A DNA stretch of 64,000 nucleotides from Mytilus edulis (lineage: Eukaryota), in the NCBI RefSeq assembly GCF_963676685.1, contig NC_092352.1:19468001-19532000 (forward strand), written 5' to 3'. Position 1 is the first letter of the stretch. Every line of letters starts with the position of its first letter. Below, piece by piece: positions 9,290 through 61,100 of the stretch. The notes under the pieces are model-generated. The model had not been told where the DNA came from. It did not search any database and saw only the letters and a program-made list of their open reading frames with translations. The translations under genes were made by a program, and so were the position numbers.

Positions 9290-11010
9290 AATATCAGGAG
9301 TGTGACTGTCTATTTCAGTGGTATCATTGGTTTCTTTTCTAGATCAGAAGTGGGCCGCGGGTTGTTTCAATGGTATCATTGGTGTCTGTATCAGTTCGGG
9401 AGTGTGACGAATTATTGCAATTGCATCATTGGTGTCTGTACCAGATCAGGAGTGTGACGGATTGTTGCAATGGTATCATTGGTATCTGTACCAGATCAGG
9501 AGTGTGACGGATTTTTGCAATGGTATCATTGGTATCTGTACCAGATCAGGAGTGTGACGAATAGTTTTTGTGGTTTCATTGATTGCTTTACCCAGTGAGA
9601 AGTGTTACAGATTATTTCAATGGTATCATCCGTGTCTGTACCAGGTCAAGAGTGTAACGGATTGTTTCAATGGTATCGTTGATGTCTGTACCTGGTCCGG
9701 AGCTTGATGGTTTGTTTCAGTTGTTTCATTGGTGGCTTTACTAAGTGAGGAGTAGGACAGATTATTTCAATGGTATCATTGGTGTCTGTACCAGGTCAGA
9801 AGTATAGAAGGATTGTTTCAATGGTTTCATTGATGTATGCACTTGATCGGGAGCGTGACGAATGTTTCAGTGGTTTCATTGTTGCTTTTTCAAATGAGGA
9901 ATGTGACGGATTATTTCAATTGTACCATTGGTGTCTGTACCAGATCATGAGCTTGACAGATTGTTTCAGTTGTTTCATTGGTGGCTTTACTAAATGAGGA
10001 GTGTGACGGATTGTTTCAGTGGTATCATTGATGTTTTTACAAGTTGGGAGCGTGGCATATTATTTCAGTGGTTTCATTGGTGGCTTTACCAAGTGAGGAG
10101 TTTCACTGATTTAAACGGTATCATTTACGTTTGTACCAGACAGGGAGCGTGACGGATTTTTTCAGTGGTTTCGTTGGTGGCTTTACCAAGTCGGAAGTGT
10201 GACGGATTGTTTCAATGGTTTCATTGGTTGCTGCATGTACCAGTCAAGAGTGTGACAGATAGTTTCAATGGGATTATTGATGTCTGTACCAGATCGGGAG
10301 TTTGATGGATTGTTTCAATTGTATCATTGGTGTCTGCACTAGTTCATGCGTATGACGGATTGTTTCAATGGTATAAAGGGTTCTGTACCATGTCAGAAGT
10401 ATGCCGGATTATGTCAATGGTATCATTGATGTTTGTACCAGCTGCGTGACGGATTGTTTCTGTGATTTAATTGGTTGCTTTACCCATGCAGTGAGGACTG
10501 TTACAGAATATTTCAATGGTTGTATTGGTGTCTGTACAAGGTCCGGAGCCTGACGGTTTGTGTCAGTTGTTTAATTGGTGGTTTTACCAAGTGAGTTGTG
10601 TGACGGATTATTTCAATGGTATCATTGGTGTCTGTACTAGGTCACTCACTCAGTATGAAGTATGAAGGATTGTTTCAATTGTAGCATTAATGTTATTGGC
10701 AATATTTTAAGAATGGTTTCATTGGTTGATTTACTTAAGGAGGAGGGTGACGGATTATGTCAATGGTATCATTGATGTCTCTACTAGGTGGTCGGGAGTA
10801 TGACGGATTGTTTCGTAGGTATCATTGAATACTTTACCAAGTGAAGAGTTTGACGGATTGTTTCAATGATATCATTGATGTATGTACAAGATCAGGAGTG
10901 TGAAGTATTATTTCAATGGTATCATTGACGTCTGTGCCGGGTCAGGAGTATGACGGGCTATTTCAATAGTCTCATTGAACTTTGTGCCGGGTCAGGAGCT
11001 TGACGGATTA
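9290..11010. repeat. 50-bp satellite array, about 34 diverged units
   Basis: Unit gagtgtgacggattgtttcaatggtatcattggtgtctgtaccagatcag with period 50 (e.g. 9431 vs 9481). A second variant ends ggtggctttaccaagtgag. Confidence 0.92.
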
Positions 11011-21914: not shown

Positions 21915-22330
21915 AAGATGTGGTATGAGTGCCAATGAGACACCTCTCCATCCAAGTAACAGTGTATAAAGTAAACCATTATAGGTCAAGGTACGATACG
22001 GCCCTCAACACAAAGTTTTTGCTCACACCGAACGGCAAGCTATAAAGGGCCCCAAAATTACTAGTGAAAAACCATTCAAACGAGAAAACCAACGGTCTAA
22101 TCTATATAAAAACGAAAAACGAGAAACACCTCTGAACCCCATAAACTGACGACAACCACTGAACAACGGATTCCTGACTTAGGACAGGTGCAAACTATTG
22201 CAGCTGGATAACTTGAACGTTTTAATGGTACCATACCTTTTCCCTTTTCTGAAACAATAGTATAACATCACACCATAGAAAGACACACTATAAAATATTA
22301 ATTGGAATGACTTTACTCAATCAAAAAACG
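21915..22330 (-). mobile_element. High-copy SINE-like repeat, family A, with twister-like core
   Basis: Same family motifs. The core cctgtcctaagtcagg is intact on the minus strand at 22173-22188. Confidence 0.8.
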
Positions 22331-24839: not shown

Positions 24840-25226
24840 TTTTTTAACTGATTCTATAGTTCGTTCTTATGTTTTACTGTTACACCACTGTCATAGAAGG
24901 GAGGGTTGGGATCCCCCTAACATGTTTAACCACTTTACATTCTGTATGTACGTGTCTGTCCTTTGTCAGGAGCTTGCAATTCAGTGGTTGTCGTTTGTTG
25001 ATGTGTTACTTATTTGTTTTTCGTTCATTGTTTTGTACATAAGTTAGGCCGTTAGTTTTTTCGTTTGAATTGTTTTAAATACATTTGTCGTTTCGGGGCC
25101 TTTTATAGCTTACGGGCTGTGCTCATTGTTAAATGCCATACGGTGACCTATAGTTGTCAATTTCTGTATCATTTGGTCTCTTGTGTAAAGGTGTCTCATT
25201 GGCAATCATCCAGCATCTTCTTTTTT
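24840..25226 (+). mobile_element. High-copy SINE-like repeat, family A, with twister-like core
   Basis: Reverse orientation of the 57421 copy. Core gggagggttgggatcc...tttaacc...gtctgtcctttgtcagga. Confidence 0.8.
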
Positions 25227-29639: not shown

Positions 29640-30098
29640 TTGCTTAGGTAAAATTTTAAAATCGTTTGTATGCACATTGAACGACAAATTTATGTGACGC
29701 ATAAAATTTTCTGATGTCAGACACTGAACTCAATGAATGTGTTCGTAGATAGTAGATGTTTTTGTGTTCTGTTTTAAAATTGTTCCTTTTAAAATTGTTA
29801 TACGATGATGACTGATGTACCCATATTTTGACTATTTTATTTATTGTGTCTGTTTATTTAACGCCATCAATGTAAATATAACAGAATTTTATGAGACTGT
29901 CATTAAAGTGAGAGGGTGAGCGCTATAGAACCAGGTTTAATCCACCATTTTCTACATTTGACTGTTCCAAATCAGGAATATGACAGTTCTTGTCCATTCG
30001 TTTTTGATACGTTTTGTTATTTGATTTTGCCATGTGATTATGGACTTTCCGAATTGATTTTCCTCTAAGTTCAGTATTTTTGTGATTTTACTTTTTTT
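29640..30098 (+). mobile_element. High-copy SINE-like repeat, family B, with twister-like core
   Basis: Shares aatccaccattttc, tatgacagtt and cagtatttttgtgattttactttt with the copies at 46283, 47940 and 49870. Confidence 0.8.
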
Positions 30099-45655: not shown

Positions 45656-46282
45656 CAATTCTCTAGAAAGGATACAAATGCTTATGCTAGTTCATATCTT
45701 ATGCCTTAACCATGTATTGTTTCATTTGGTAATGCTATACTTGTTCCTAGGAGTTGGTATGCTTTACTTAAAATGTCCTGTACCAAGTCAGGGATATAGC
45801 AGTTTTTATCTAATAGTTCGTCTTTACGCATGTTGAATTGGCGTTTTTTGTTCAGTTGTTGCACTTCAGAGATTGTGTTGTTTCGTTGTTTTCGTCTTAT
45901 AGTTGGTGTGTTGCATCCCGTTTTAGCAAGGAAGTCATATAACCTCCTTGGTTTTAGTTTGCAACCCGGATTTGTTTTCTCTCAATCGATATTTATGCCT
46001 TTTGAACAGGGTAAACTACTGTTTCCTTTATTTAATATGTATTAGTTATGCTTCATATAATTCGATGGTATAATATCAACAGTTTCGTCACGGTGTGGCC
46101 AATCATTACAAAATAATCTAAAAATAATAAAAGAAATACCCTGATCTACGCAGCATGAAAATCTCGTTAGATGAAAACAGATAGCTGATGACTGGATACA
46201 ACAATAGAATAAGTATAGGTATACCAACCAACAATAAAAATTTGACCTGGAAATAGAAGACAGAAACTTATACTTTTAAAGC

Positions 46283-46480
46283 GACTGTCGTAGAAGTGAC
46301 AGGTTTAGTGCTGTAAAACCAGGTTCAATCCACCATTTTCTACATTTGAAAATGTCTGTACTAAGTCAGGAATATGACAGTTGTTGTCCATTGGTTTGAT
46401 GTGTTTTGTCCTTTAATTTTGCCATTTGAGTAGGGACTTTCCGTTTTGAATTTTCAGTATTTTTGTGATTTTTACTTTTT
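46283..46480 (+). mobile_element. SINE-like repeat, family B, with twister-like core at 46284-46381
   Basis: Same family as the 29640 and 49870 copies. Confidence 0.8.
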
Positions 46481-47939: not shown

Positions 47940-48165
47940 AGTAAAATCACAAAAATACTGAACTCGGAGGAAAATTTAAAATGGTAATAAGTCCTTTTAA
48001 TCAAATGGCAAAATCAAATAATAAAACACATCAAATGAATGGACAAAAACTGTCATATGCCTGACTTGGTACAGGCAATTTCAAATGTAAAAAATGGTGG
48101 ATTGAACTGGTTTTATAGCGCTGAACATCTCACTTGTACGACAATCGCATCAATTTATGAGAGAC
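47940..48165 (-). mobile_element. SINE-like repeat, family B, in a DnaJ-gene intron
   Basis: Same family as the 49870 copy; twister-like core at 48049-48145. Confidence 0.8.
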
Positions 48166-49869: not shown

Positions 49870-50112
49870 GTAAAAAGTAAAATCACAAAAACACTGAACT
49901 CCGAGGAAAATTAAAAAAAGAAAGTCCCCAATCAAACGGCAAAATCAAAAGTTCAAACACATCAAACGAATGGATAACAACTGTCATATTTCTGACTTGG
50001 TACAGGCATTTTCTTATGTAGAAAATGGTGGATAGAACCTGGTTTTATAGCTAGCTAAACCTCTCACTTGTATGACAGTCACATCAAATTCCATTATATT
50101 GTCAACGATGCG
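49870..50112 (-). mobile_element. SINE-like repeat, family B
   Basis: Best-preserved family B copy. Confidence 0.8.
49980..50079 (-). ncRNA. Type-P5 twister ribozyme-like motif within a family B repeat
   Basis: ACUGUCAUA(P5) CAA GUGA GAGGU...UUCUA UCC AC C AUUUUCU-ACAUA-AGAAAAU G(P3) CCUG UACCAAGU CAGA(P4) AA UAUGACAGU(P5'). Pseudoknots ACC/GGU and AC/GU are present. This copy has U at the cleavage-site A, so it may be inactive. Confidence 0.65.
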
Positions 50113-52682
50113 TGTAATACGTTTCTTGTTTGAAACTGAATATCGATATCTACAAAAAGGACATATCTTCTTGATATCTATCCTATCATATTTATTAAAT
50201 GTCAGTTTCTAGTTTTCGCATTTTAGAAGCGATTTGTTGGTAATCCAAAGTTAAAATATCAAAATTAATCATCAAGGTAACGATAAGTGTGATATTTTTA
50301 TCAATTGATGAAATTTTTAACCAGATCTTAAATTAGTTCGGTCATAAGCTCTTCATTTTAACCGACAGTAAAAATATCGTTCTAAACGTAGGGTTATGGA
50401 TTCAATTATGACAAAAGAATACTATGTGTGACTCTCTTTCTATAAGCCTTCATTATCACCTTTCAAGCTAGGACTGGCGAAATTCCAGTGTATAAAACAG
50501 AATTAATGGGCACTCACCAGTTTCACTTATAAAACAAAAATAATGGTCACTCACCAGTTTCATTTATAAAGACACTCACAAGTTACATTTTACATTGAAT
50601 GACAGCTGAACGCATGAAGTGTAATGTCCTATACAGCGTAACACTGTTACATTAAGCACAGTGAAAACCAGGAATAAAGTATACTCGCGTATATGGAATT
50701 TGCTATGACAACTTACAATATGTTATGGAAAGTTCATAAGTGGAAGGTTCAAATATTTTGAAAACAAAAAAAGTCCGGTTACACCATGAATACATTTGAA
50801 ATTCAACTTTCTTTTCGTTTTTTACGTGAATGGAACAGTCATGGAACACTTTTCCAAGAAAAATGGAATTATGTTCTCTCGTCATACCCTCTTATATTTC
50901 CGACAACAAAAATAGGATCCTGACTAAACGTTACACATATTTGAAAACCGCTATTTACAATTGTTGGAATAGTTAAAATGATAAACTTTGTACTTACAAA
51001 ATTCTTATCTCATACATTTTACATTGACAAAGCACTATAAATAGATCCTATTCATAGTTATTCTTCCTTGTTATTCTAGTTATGATATATCTATTTATAA
51101 AAAAAACTACTGTAAAGCTGCCAAATTAAGGTTATTTAAACAGTATACAGTTAATGGGTTTATTTCGTTGCACATTATACATTACGCGTTTATTACATTC
51201 GAAATTTCCTACAATGATGATCTATTAAAAAAAAATAGATCAAGTTTCTATTCATTTAGTCGCCCAACTTACCAAATTAAAAAAAAAGAGTTTTGAGGCA
51301 CCGACGTTACTTTGTTTGAAGAAACTCATTTTACTGTTTCAAAATGCAATCAGTCTTTTTTGTCATTTTTTGCTTAAAAAAATCGTGCGGAGGATAAAGG
51401 TTAGGATTTTTCGTAATTTCTTTGAGGTTTTGCATGGGGTTTTGATACAACTTTAAGTTTTTTTCAAAGAAGTATTATGGCTATAAAATAATGAAAGTTT
51501 TATTTTTGTGTTTGTCTTAAAAATGTGTTTTAGAAATTATAAACTTACACGTTTCATTTAAAACAAATATAACATAAAAATGGGCCTTTACTATTCAGAT
51601 TGTCCGTCCGTCCGCACCGAATCGTGTCCGCTCTATAAAACCACTATACACTTCAGTGATAAAACATGGCATGGTTATTTTAAACTGTTCACTAAAAGAC
51701 ATGGGCAATAAGCTTATTTCATCTTTATAGTCACCAATGTGCATGCGCACAAAATCATTAAAAGACCTTTAAGTTCCAGTATGAATCTTTGTATGATTAT
51801 TTAGTTACCACTGCTAGAAAATGTGCCGCTTATATAGAAGAAATATTATGTTGATGATTAAGATTACTGAAGATAATGATGTCAAGATTTGAAAAATAAA
51901 GAATATAGTTAAAGACGGTCCGTGTAACACATATCAATTCAAAATATCAAAAAGTTTTCTAATTTAAAATTTTTGGAATTTTGAGCAAAGTTTAAAAATA
52001 TCAAAATTCCAAAGTGTATATGCTGCAAGGACCTCTGTCAATGCTCCCATCAATATCCTCTAGTCATGAACCAGGATTTTATGTTAATTGCGACGCCATG
52101 TTTTCTTTTGCGTCTTGTGCTCTTATAACAACAAAACTTCAACGACCACAGTAAGTCTTTGCAACGTACATGTATTATTATTTTTAGCCAGGAAGTCTGC
52201 TTAAATCGGTGATAAAAACTTGAAAAAGGTATATACCCTCGCCACATTCCTAATTCAAAAACCGTGGTTTTCTTGATGATTGTTTTGTTATAAATCAGGC
52301 AATTCGGTTTTTTTTCAAATTAAAGTCACAAATCGACTGTTAACGCTAAAGCAAAAAACTGAAATCGACCAAAAGACAAAGTTATGAGATCCCATATCTG
52401 ATTCCTGTTAGGGACGACATCAAAAGATCGATGTAGAATAAAAATCTTAAATCTAATAGTTTGGGGGTGGGTGGTTAAAATTCTACAAGTTTTGTATATC
52501 TTAAATCGATTTTTACATATAATATCCCTATTGGTAAATATTTTTTTCCCCAAATTAAGTTAAGAGGGGGGTCGGGGTGTCAGTGAAAAAACTATGTGAA
52601 TTAAGTTTTTATCCTACATTGAATATTGAAGTCGTCCCTTATTCAGTGGTTGTCGTTGGTTGCTGTTTAACATATAAACAAG

Positions 52683-57420: not shown

Positions 57421-57712
57421 AAGAAGATGTGGTATGATTGCCAATGAGACAACTGTCTACAAGAGACCAAAATGACACAGACATTAACAACTATAGGTCA
57501 CCGTACGGCCTTCAACAATGAGCAAAGCCCATACCGCATAGTCAGCTATAAAGGCCCCGATATGACAATGTAAAACAATTCAAACGAGAAAACTAACGGC
57601 CTTATTTATTTAAAAAAAAAATGAACGAAAAACAAATATGTAACACATAAACAAACGACAACCACTGAATTACAGGCTCCTGACTTGGTACACGCACATA
57701 AATATATAATGT
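57421..57712 (-). mobile_element. SINE-like repeat, family A, well preserved and truncated within the core
   Basis: aagaagatgtggtatgattgccaatgagacaact...accactgaattacaggctcctgacttgg. Confidence 0.85.
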
Positions 57713-58759
57713 GAAAGCAGGATTGCATTTTCTTATCAAGCTTCTTTTCACATCTCTTAGAAAATGTTCAGTTTAATATGTGGTATATGGTACGAAATGA
57801 CGAAATGATGAAATGAATAGACATGATATCATAGCAGATATCTAGACATGAAATAATCATATAATTGGTATTTTTCAAAGAAAAGTGAATAAACTTATCA
57901 AAAGTTTTTCAATCGTTTTTACATAAAGTAGGTATGACAAATGTAAAACAAGCCATCCATTTACATTTAATCGGTGGATTCAACAGTTACCAGGTACAGT
58001 ATATATATAAAAAAAACTAAATATAAATAAACAATTTATATTTAGTTTTGTCTTAATTTCACAATGCTATACTTGCTACAGGGAAACAATATATGAAACT
58101 CATCTCCTATTATGTTGACAACACAATGTACACAATCCAAGTTAGTTTGCTATAGTATTCCTTCTACCAGTATCTATTTAAACTTTTAAGTTTAAAAGTT
58201 CTAATAACATTAACTGTACCGATCTTAATGTACTAATTTTGCATTTCGACAATTGCATGATGTCAATTCAGTGATGCTATAATTTAAAATAGTTTAAAGT
58301 CCAATACATGGTACAAAAGTTGTATTTAAGTGTAGAACTATGGATTCTGTCTTTTTCTTGCTTTTTAAAATGAACCATTATAATGTCCAGTCCTTTCGTA
58401 GGAAATAAATTGAAAGAAATTTTGTTACTCTTAATTTCGGTATCTCTTGATTGAGATTTAGAGAATAGCTTCCCACTGAAATCAGGCGACGTGTGATAGT
58501 CTTGACCAACGTGACGGCAATACTGATCAATGGACACATTATATGATATTGAAGTGAGTTATTTCAACACACGGGAATTTTGAATTGGTTTCTAAATTTT
58601 CAATAGATTTAACAATGTAAGGAATATTTCTCCTTATGGTAGATATGGTGTCTTCTGTCATCTTTGATTATAAAATAGTAGAAAACAATTTGTCTCAACC
58701 TTTGATACTTAATGTACACATTTTGAGAGACAAATATACTTCATTTGTTGAAGACTTCA

Positions 58760-60539: not shown

Positions 60540-61100
60540 CGATGTGGTACGATTACCAATGAAACAACTATCCACCAAAGTTCAAATAAAGTAGATGTAA
60601 GCATTTAAAGACAACCGTACAGCTTAAACAACGAGAAGAAATACATACTGTATAATTGACTACAAATGGCCCCGAAATAAAAAATATGGAACATCAATTG
60701 AGAAAACAAACCGGCGCCTAATTTATTAGAAAACAATTTACGAAAAAACAAATATGACTGACATGAACCAACACTAACCACTGAACTACAGGCTTGTGAC
60801 TTGTAACAGACACATATATAATGTGGCGGGGTAAAGCATGTTTGTGAGCGCTAAATCCTCCCCTAAACTGGAACATTGGTGTATAACAGCACAACATAAG
60901 AACAAACTATAAATATCAGTTGAAAAAAGCTTCAAATCAGATCGATACAAAACAGAAAAATCTTCGAACAAAACTACAGAAGGGTATTTATTCATCCCTC
61001 ATTCCTAACAAAAAGAAAAGACTCTGATTACCAATCTGAAAGTACTCGAAGTTACTGACAGCTAGTTCAAAGCCAATAACAAGTAATAACAAAATCATGT
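60540..61100 (-). mobile_element. SINE-like repeat, family A, longer diverged copy
   Basis: gatgtggtacgattaccaatga...accactgaactacagg...atgtggcggggtaaa...ctcccctaa. Confidence 0.7.

Follow-up and report, generated by a model that had tools for sequence, protein, structure and literature searches.

The window analysed here, a stretch of 64,000 nt of Mytilus edulis DNA, contains abundant repeats that share a core, and the question raised by this locus is whether that core is a twister ribozyme in its circularly permuted form, type P5. A sequence-only reading had proposed this for four copies. When the sequence was re-read, the four copies were found at the coordinates named, were homologous to each other and read as described. 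The copy of primary interest lies at 49980-50079 on the minus strand. The cores in the window, and the single parts of this copy, are as follows.

49980-50079, minus strand: family B core, the copy of primary interest (127.5 bits with the covariance model R1, described below)
50079-50071, minus strand: its P5'
50067-50064, minus strand: its P2'
50063-50062, minus strand: its GA
50061-50059, minus strand: its T1'
50058-50036, minus strand: its palindrome region
50035/50034, minus strand: its predicted cut
50032-50030, minus strand: its P2
50029-50028, minus strand: its T2'
50027-50007, minus strand: its P3
50006-49991, minus strand: its P4/L4/P4'
49988-49980, minus strand: its P5
49871-50114, minus strand: the whole family B element holding this core, 5'-truncated, 244 bp, with the family's constant 3' end
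48049-48145, minus strand: older family B core, predicted cut 48104/48103
46284-46381, plus strand: older family B core, predicted cut 46326/46327
29896-29987, plus strand: older family B core, predicted cut 29938/29939
22165-22253, minus strand: decayed family A core (P2 ACCC/GGGU and T1 CCU/AGG in the family A consensus)
24878-25010, plus strand: decayed family E/F core of the same layout, with the palindrome GGGAUCCC
60757-60889, minus strand: decayed family E/F core
57627-57790, minus strand: family E copy, P4/L4 hairpin intact, 5' half diverged
45729-45805, plus strand: partial core, 3' half only, with the exact P4/L4 16-mer at 45777-45792

Both helices that had been claimed for the 49980-50079 core were present. 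The closing stem comprises 9 bp (50079-50071 with 49988-49980), and P3 comprises 8 bp, formed by pairing of CAUUUUCU with AGAAAAUG. GUGA-GAGGU is located toward the 5' side of the core, and the P4/L4 16-mer (CCUGUACCAAGUCAGA, 50006-49991) forms the hairpin CCUG-UACCAAGU-CAGA. As had been stated, each of the window copies carries at least one core mutation (4/4). In the 49980-50079 copy, position +1 (50034), just 3' of the predicted cut, is U and not A, and P4' is CAGA and not CAGG; this copy reads UUCUAUCC where other copies have UUCAAUCC. In the 48049-48145 copy, T1' is UGU and a deletion of 1 nt lies upstream of the cut. CA replaces GA in the 46284-46381 copy, which places a C at the position of the catalytic G; the cut site proposed for this copy, 46326/46327, agreed with an independent parse. 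The 29896-29987 copy has lost the 3' strand of P3 and has AU as T2, and its T1 is UCC/GGG, changed on both sides yet still paired. The four window copies are decayed and most likely inactive. Allowing up to three mismatches, the P4/L4 16-mer occurs 15 times in the window, compared with 0.16 occurrences expected from shuffles.

The sequence scanned amounted to 354 kb and consisted of the window, 29 loci around young family B copies and 200 kb at arbitrary round coordinates. A core of about 100 nt was common to at least five repeat families (B, C, D, A and E/F) that differ in their flanks; the consensi of families C, G and E/F rest on few copies. The order of parts was the same in all families: P5', P2', GA, T1', N/AA (the slash marks the predicted cut), P2, T2', P3, P4/L4 and P5. 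All consensi have a short A-rich joint after P5', about 20-25 nt between T1' and N/AA, and a T2' of two nucleotides; P4 is CCUG, followed by the loop U-xxx-AA-GU, by CAGG, by A, AG or AA, and then by P5. As read from the consensi, this common layout is that of the twister consensus in its type-P5 permutation (PMC5408937; Weinberg group). As in the type-P5 twister (RF02684, clan CL00120; PMC5408937), the parts follow each other in the same order with the opening at P5, the P4 loop pairs with the strand that follows GA (T1) and with the dinucleotide that follows P2 (T2), N/AA directly precedes P2, and P3 is optional. The nucleotides that were invariant across the family consensi, namely AA at the cut, GA, and AA and G in L4, are those listed as conserved in a review of twister ribozymes (PMC5408937).

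The families differ in the sequences of the helices and retain the pairing. T1 is CCC/GGG in family D, ACC/GGU in families B and C, and CCU/AGG in family A; single divergent copies have UCC/GGA (locus L043) or UCC/GGG (window, 29896). These changes affect both sides and occur at either end of the pseudoknot, which has 3 bp and joins strands 50-60 nt apart. T2 combines GC with GU in D and A, and AC with GU in B and C. The compensatory pairs described for family B, T1 ACC/GGU and T2 AC/GU, are indeed present in the family consensus. P2 is CCCC/GGGG in D, ACCC/GGGU in A, UCC/G-U-GA in B and CCC/G-A-GG in C. P5 is wholly different between families with pairing always kept, and a comparison of B with C shows three double compensating changes plus a wobble there. 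The sequence of P3 varies among families too, and it pairs. The short motifs around the helices vary as well: family D has GAGGG, U/AA, GC and the loop UCCCAAGU, family A has GAAGG and the loop UCCUAAGU, and families B and C have GAGGU, the loop UACCAAGU and AC in place of GC.

The agreement with the twister consensus was not uniform across families. The canonical P4/L4 16-mer, as given in the sequence-only reading, matched the published Schistosoma twister domains, in which P4 is CCG, L4 GUCCCAAGC, P4' CCGG, L2 GC and L1 UAA, together with GAGGG (PMC8501958). Family D is identical to this 16-mer at 14 of 16 letters, and the differences include a compensating change of a G-C to a U-A pair. In the family D core (e.g. 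L041:8953-9039), P2 has four Watson-Crick pairs (CCCC/GGGG) and lies directly after AA and before GA; the P4 loop UCCCAAGU forms a T1 of 3 bp (CCC/GGG) and a T2 of GC with GU, which contains one wobble. In the family B consensus, T1 ACC/GGU, T2 AC/GU, GA, C/AA and the AA of L4 were all found, but P2 does not reach four pairs: UCC opposite GUGA gives three pairs and a bulged U. Between B and C the outer P2 pair covaries from U-A to C-G (CCC opposite GAGG in C), and both families lack one nucleotide in the 5' strand of P2. An altered length of P2 may disturb the twister active site (PMC5408937).

Several differences from the type-P5 twister were observed. First, T2 is G.U/C-G or A-U/C-G in the repeats and GC/GC in the canonical ribozyme. 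Second, T1 is ACC/GGU or CCU/AGG in some families, and P2 is reduced to 3 bp with a bulge in B and C. Third, a canonical P1, formed by the strand after T1' and the strand before the cut, was absent from every family, and its place is taken by a segment of about 20-25 nt that contains one perfect palindrome or two; in family D, the 21 nt between GAGGG and U/AA lack end-to-end pairing and contain two palindromes of 10 nt. P1 is dispensable for twister cleavage in vitro (PMC5408937), and therefore its lack does not rule out activity of the repeat cores. Minimum-free-energy folding recovered P5, P3 and P4 in all families; in these folds, a local alternative pairing is open to T1', in B between GGUUU and AAACC.

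Next, the fold was examined with a strict type-P5 descriptor, which was taken from the published consensus but composed after the sequences had been seen. It comprised a P2 of 4 bp and a T1 of 3 bp, both Watson-Crick, a T2 of 2 bp, a P4 of 4 bp, GA, AA after the cut, AA in L4 and a P5 of 5 bp. Three family D copies matched in the 354 kb, compared with none in 30 dinucleotide shuffles. When a one-nucleotide bulge was allowed in P2, the matches numbered 20 versus about 0.4 per shuffle; 17 of them were young B copies. This relaxed descriptor was passed by 17 of the 29 young B copies and by none of the four window copies.

A covariance model (R1) was built from B and C copies only, with P5, P2, P3 and P4 and without pseudoknots. 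Family D was recovered over its full length with 34 bits and E 2e-6, and family A likewise with 31 bits; this links families B and D, as the model had been derived from B and C alone. In a cross-family alignment by MAFFT, P2' and P5' were shifted by at least one column, and a model-based alignment (A4) was used instead. In A4, 88.5% of the cells of all helices were paired versus 72.8% after shuffling (0 of 500 shuffles reached this value) and 30-46% with a slid partner, the nested helices being counted on an alignment that had been fitted to them. For T1 and T2, which lie outside the model, 82.7% were paired versus 72.8 +/- 2.0% in shuffles (0/500) and 15-39% with a slid partner; 13 cells were changed on both sides, versus 4.5 +/- 1.5 in shuffles. 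Common ancestry of the copies inflates these shuffle statistics, and the independent covariation events are the changes between families described above.

The comparison with the Rfam models, a check that had been suggested, had a mixed outcome. In a search of 97 nt, Twister-P5 (RF02684) gave a family D match (L041:8964-9030) that spans the whole model, positions 1-58, with 23.4 bits and E 0.002; P2', GAGGG, UAA, P2, GC and P4/L4 were aligned in the register that had been parsed by hand, whereas P1 was skipped by a local end. The score stayed below the gathering score of 37.6 bits. Family B gave only partial twister-P1 matches, with 18.5 bits and E 0.07 for a copy at locus L003 and 15.0 bits and E 0.7 for the window copy (gathering score 67.2). 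No twister match was obtained for the family C core in a search of about 100 nt, for the whole window at the gathering threshold, or for stretches of 400-2000 nt (E up to 10 for those of 500-2000 nt), including family D in a 401-nt search. A genome-wide search with Twister-P5 gave no match among the 79 of 31,236 candidates scored. All Rfam twister scores, in every family, were under the gathering score. With default covariance-model filters, the family was missed until the search space had been reduced to about 100 nt. With regard to the proposed type-P5 identity, the fold, the order of parts and the covariation of T1, T2, P2, P3 and P5 between families speak for it, while family B, with its bulged three-pair P2, its lack of a canonical P1 and its weak, partial Rfam match, is the less certain part.

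The designation of the repeats as SINE-like did not hold. The young B subfamily, to which the 49980 copy belongs, has at least 40 copies that are 95-98% identical over the core. Alignment of 29 of them revealed a single constant 3' end and 5' ends spread over at least 645 bp, the hallmark of target-primed reverse transcription accompanied by 5' truncation. The family B core is located on the sense strand of the element, about 135 nt from the 3' end and more than 430 nt from the 5' end; relatives of the 49871-50114 element elsewhere extend at least 400 bp further on the 5' side. The family D element has 616 bp and its core occupies 291-377, 290 nt from the 5' end. The core is thus internal in B and D and is not a SINE head. 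On the alignment of the copies, the element with the B core is a longer non-autonomous, 5'-truncating repeat of the non-LTR type. ARAGORN found no tRNA in the window, and a tRNA-derived SINE head was discarded as an origin of the core on this ground, on its internal position and on the restriction of a B-box-like motif to B and C. Tandem duplications of about 170-250 bp were observed in the 5' region of a long B element (L007:817-1314) and just downstream of a B element (L004:1754-2250).

The copies of family C are 98-99% identical and those of family A 89-93%; judged from such identities, B and C are recently active families. R1 gave 13 matches at E < 0.005 in the 200 kb of arbitrary sequence, two of which pass the strict descriptor, and scaling to the genome of 1.37 Gb yields about 9 x 10^4 cores. 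The words of family D are so common that a DNA search of the genome masks them. At one locus (L030:600-2500; G000:C10:41077718-41080828), four cores of three families, i.e., C, old B, young B and a 5'-truncated D, lie in one orientation within 1.9 kb, and similar clusters were found at L037 and L041. They recall the tandem-like arrangements of SINEs in bivalves (PMC11481361).

Taken together, in at least five families the master copies have kept the twister architecture by compensating changes, which indicates that the fold was selected while the families spread. The parts retained are the P5 closing stem, P2, the P3 hairpin, the P4 hairpin with the loop U-xxx-AA-GU, T1 and T2, and, among the unpaired parts, GA before T1' and AA after the cut. 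Descent of the core from a twister, with the fold under selection, is very probable. On these features of the consensi, the core is not a chance feature but a P5-permuted twister variant without P1 in an abundant retroelement superfamily, with B as a divergent member. The explanation that we favour overall, and consider likely, is a divergent P5-permuted domain of the twister class on the sense strand of a superfamily of the non-LTR type, with predicted cleavage. In an element-containing transcript, L4 would pair with T1' and T2' and thereby form a double pseudoknot. Transesterification between N-1 and A+1 would then be catalysed by the G of GA together with the A on the 3' side of the scissile bond, and would leave a 2',3'-cyclic phosphate and a 5'-OH. 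The predicted scissile bonds in the window are the four listed above. Self-cleavage is a reasonable expectation for at least the canonical-looking families D and A, whereas for the family B consensus the prediction is somewhat doubtful.

The retrotransposed copies do not carry a footprint of cleavage. Among about 14 5'-truncated copies, none had its 5' end at the predicted cut, and full-length young copies contain both halves around it, and thus the RNA that was reverse transcribed had been uncleaved. Long B copies have a single core each, and no second ribozyme was found upstream, so that a pair of the retrozyme kind is lacking. As no copy starts at A+1 and both halves are kept, cleavage, if any, is partial or conditional, or takes place off the productive template. 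Probably it would act on part of the transcripts only, such as read-through or host-embedded RNA, or under certain conditions.

The best surviving alternative is that the core descends from a twister but has lost cleavage, and that the fold was kept for another role in the element RNA. The core could let the partner reverse transcriptase recognise or package the RNA, contribute to RNA stability, mediate dimerisation or, in B and C, serve as an internal polymerase III promoter. The retention of both sides of the cut in retrotransposed copies, none of which begins at it, would be in agreement with this explanation, and so would the absence of a canonical P1 and the shortened P2 of B and C. In these two families, the motif GGTTCAAYCC resembles the B box of polymerase III promoters; it is found at 50038-50029 in the window and recurs at the equivalent position of all B and C copies. 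Furthermore, 7 of the 29 young B copies start 2-17 nt upstream of P5', and a short, internally promoted form of the B element is possible. However, the B-box resemblance is missing in D and A, and P1 is dispensable for catalysis. In addition, a purely structural role would not need the unpaired catalytic GA and the A after the cut, which are invariant between the consensi, and family D has every feature of the catalytic core of the twister consensus. We therefore regard a fossil or exapted domain as unlikely, although it is the foremost competitor of a domain with predicted cleavage.

The palindromes at the place of P1 lead to another possibility. In every family, a perfect palindrome of 6-10 nt begins 1-3 nt after T1', and its sequence is different in each family. 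Its length is 10 nt in D, C and young B (50056-50047 in the 49980-50079 copy), 8 nt in old B and one E/F copy, and 6 nt in A; a second palindrome abuts the cut in D, A and one E/F copy. By comparison, palindromes of at least 8 nt occur in 9.5% of genomic 23-mers. The palindromes of young and old B differ by a central insertion of 2 nt that keeps the symmetry. This pattern suggests a tiny hairpin or RNA-RNA dimerisation. Dimeric action has been reported for the minimal hammerheads of Penelope-like elements. By analogy, the repeats might form an undescribed twister subclass in which palindromes replace P1 and two RNAs or neighbouring copies pair in trans to complete the ribozyme, an idea that we consider rather improbable. 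If it were true, cleavage would depend on concentration, which would explain the uncleaved templates of retrotransposition, and a genome with about 10^5 cores would be by far the largest known reservoir of twisters.

The weakest alternative, a chance resemblance in which an ordinary SINE central domain or a degenerate tRNA-derived head forms generic hairpins without any relation to twister, can draw on known SINE superfamilies of molluscs whose central domains are conserved and which have stem-loops (such as MESC, Vhc and Nin-DC), on the Rfam scores under the gathering score and on the B-box-like motif of B and C, but it is very improbable in view of the lack of an ARAGORN tRNA in the window, the unpaired would-be T stem, the distance of the core from the element 5' end in D and B, the Twister-P5 match in the hand-parsed register, the covariation of two pseudoknots about 50-60 nt apart in register only and the strict descriptor without matches in shuffles.

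To our knowledge, 5' processing of Perere-3 in Schistosoma is the one biological role of twister that has been demonstrated so far. Twister variants at the 5' end of this element have been published (PMC8501958), and similar variants in RTE elements have been mentioned as unpublished work (PMC7761336). The repeats described here share with them the twister fold, the large number of copies, the sense strand and the occurrence in invertebrate non-LTR retrotransposons. [quoted passage not shown] An internal, P5-permuted ribozyme cannot simply define the 5' end of its element. This position raises the question of which effect cleavage would have on the element and on host pre-mRNAs that contain sense copies. 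If activity were confirmed in several young families, the repeats would be a second and much larger natural twister system. Moreover, nature has supplied a ready mutational series for the fold, with variants of T1, T2 and P2 and with palindromes in place of P1.

Two further groups of elements are similar in part. Like the hammerheads of Penelope-like elements, of animal retrozymes and of the Schistosoma Sm-alpha SINE, the core is a small motif of the self-cleaving type in abundant non-autonomous retroelements of invertebrates, including mussels (PMC7229834, PMC7761336), and it has a palindrome where the closing helix is expected. It differs from the hammerhead retrozymes in the ribozyme class and in the lack of a tandem arrangement in long B copies. 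Like the central domains MESC, Vhc, Nin-DC and Meta of mollusc SINEs, it is a domain of about 100 nt that is common to families with different flanks and tails (PMC4758252, PMC4824008, PMC11481361). A stem-loop structure has likewise been predicted for those domains. In the portions of the mollusc SINE domain literature that were available, no domain is tied to a ribozyme. Literature searches for twister, ribozyme and Mytilus returned only work on hammerhead retrozymes, those for twister in animal retroelements returned nothing on mussel repeats, and those with sequence words of the core returned unrelated work only.

Two additional observations were made in the window. Just upstream of the 49871-50114 element, at 50184-50279 on the minus strand, weak matches resembling C/D-box snoRNAs were found, namely snR54 (23.6 bits, E 0.57) and snR51; they are far under the gathering score and are probably due to chance. 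The region 9294-11009 contains a satellite of about 34 units of 50 bp. Each unit includes a copy of the P4/L4 hairpin (UCUGUACCAGGUCAGG-like) and about 34 nt that resemble the family E sequence downstream of the hairpin, and the satellite looks like a descendant of the 3' half of the core.
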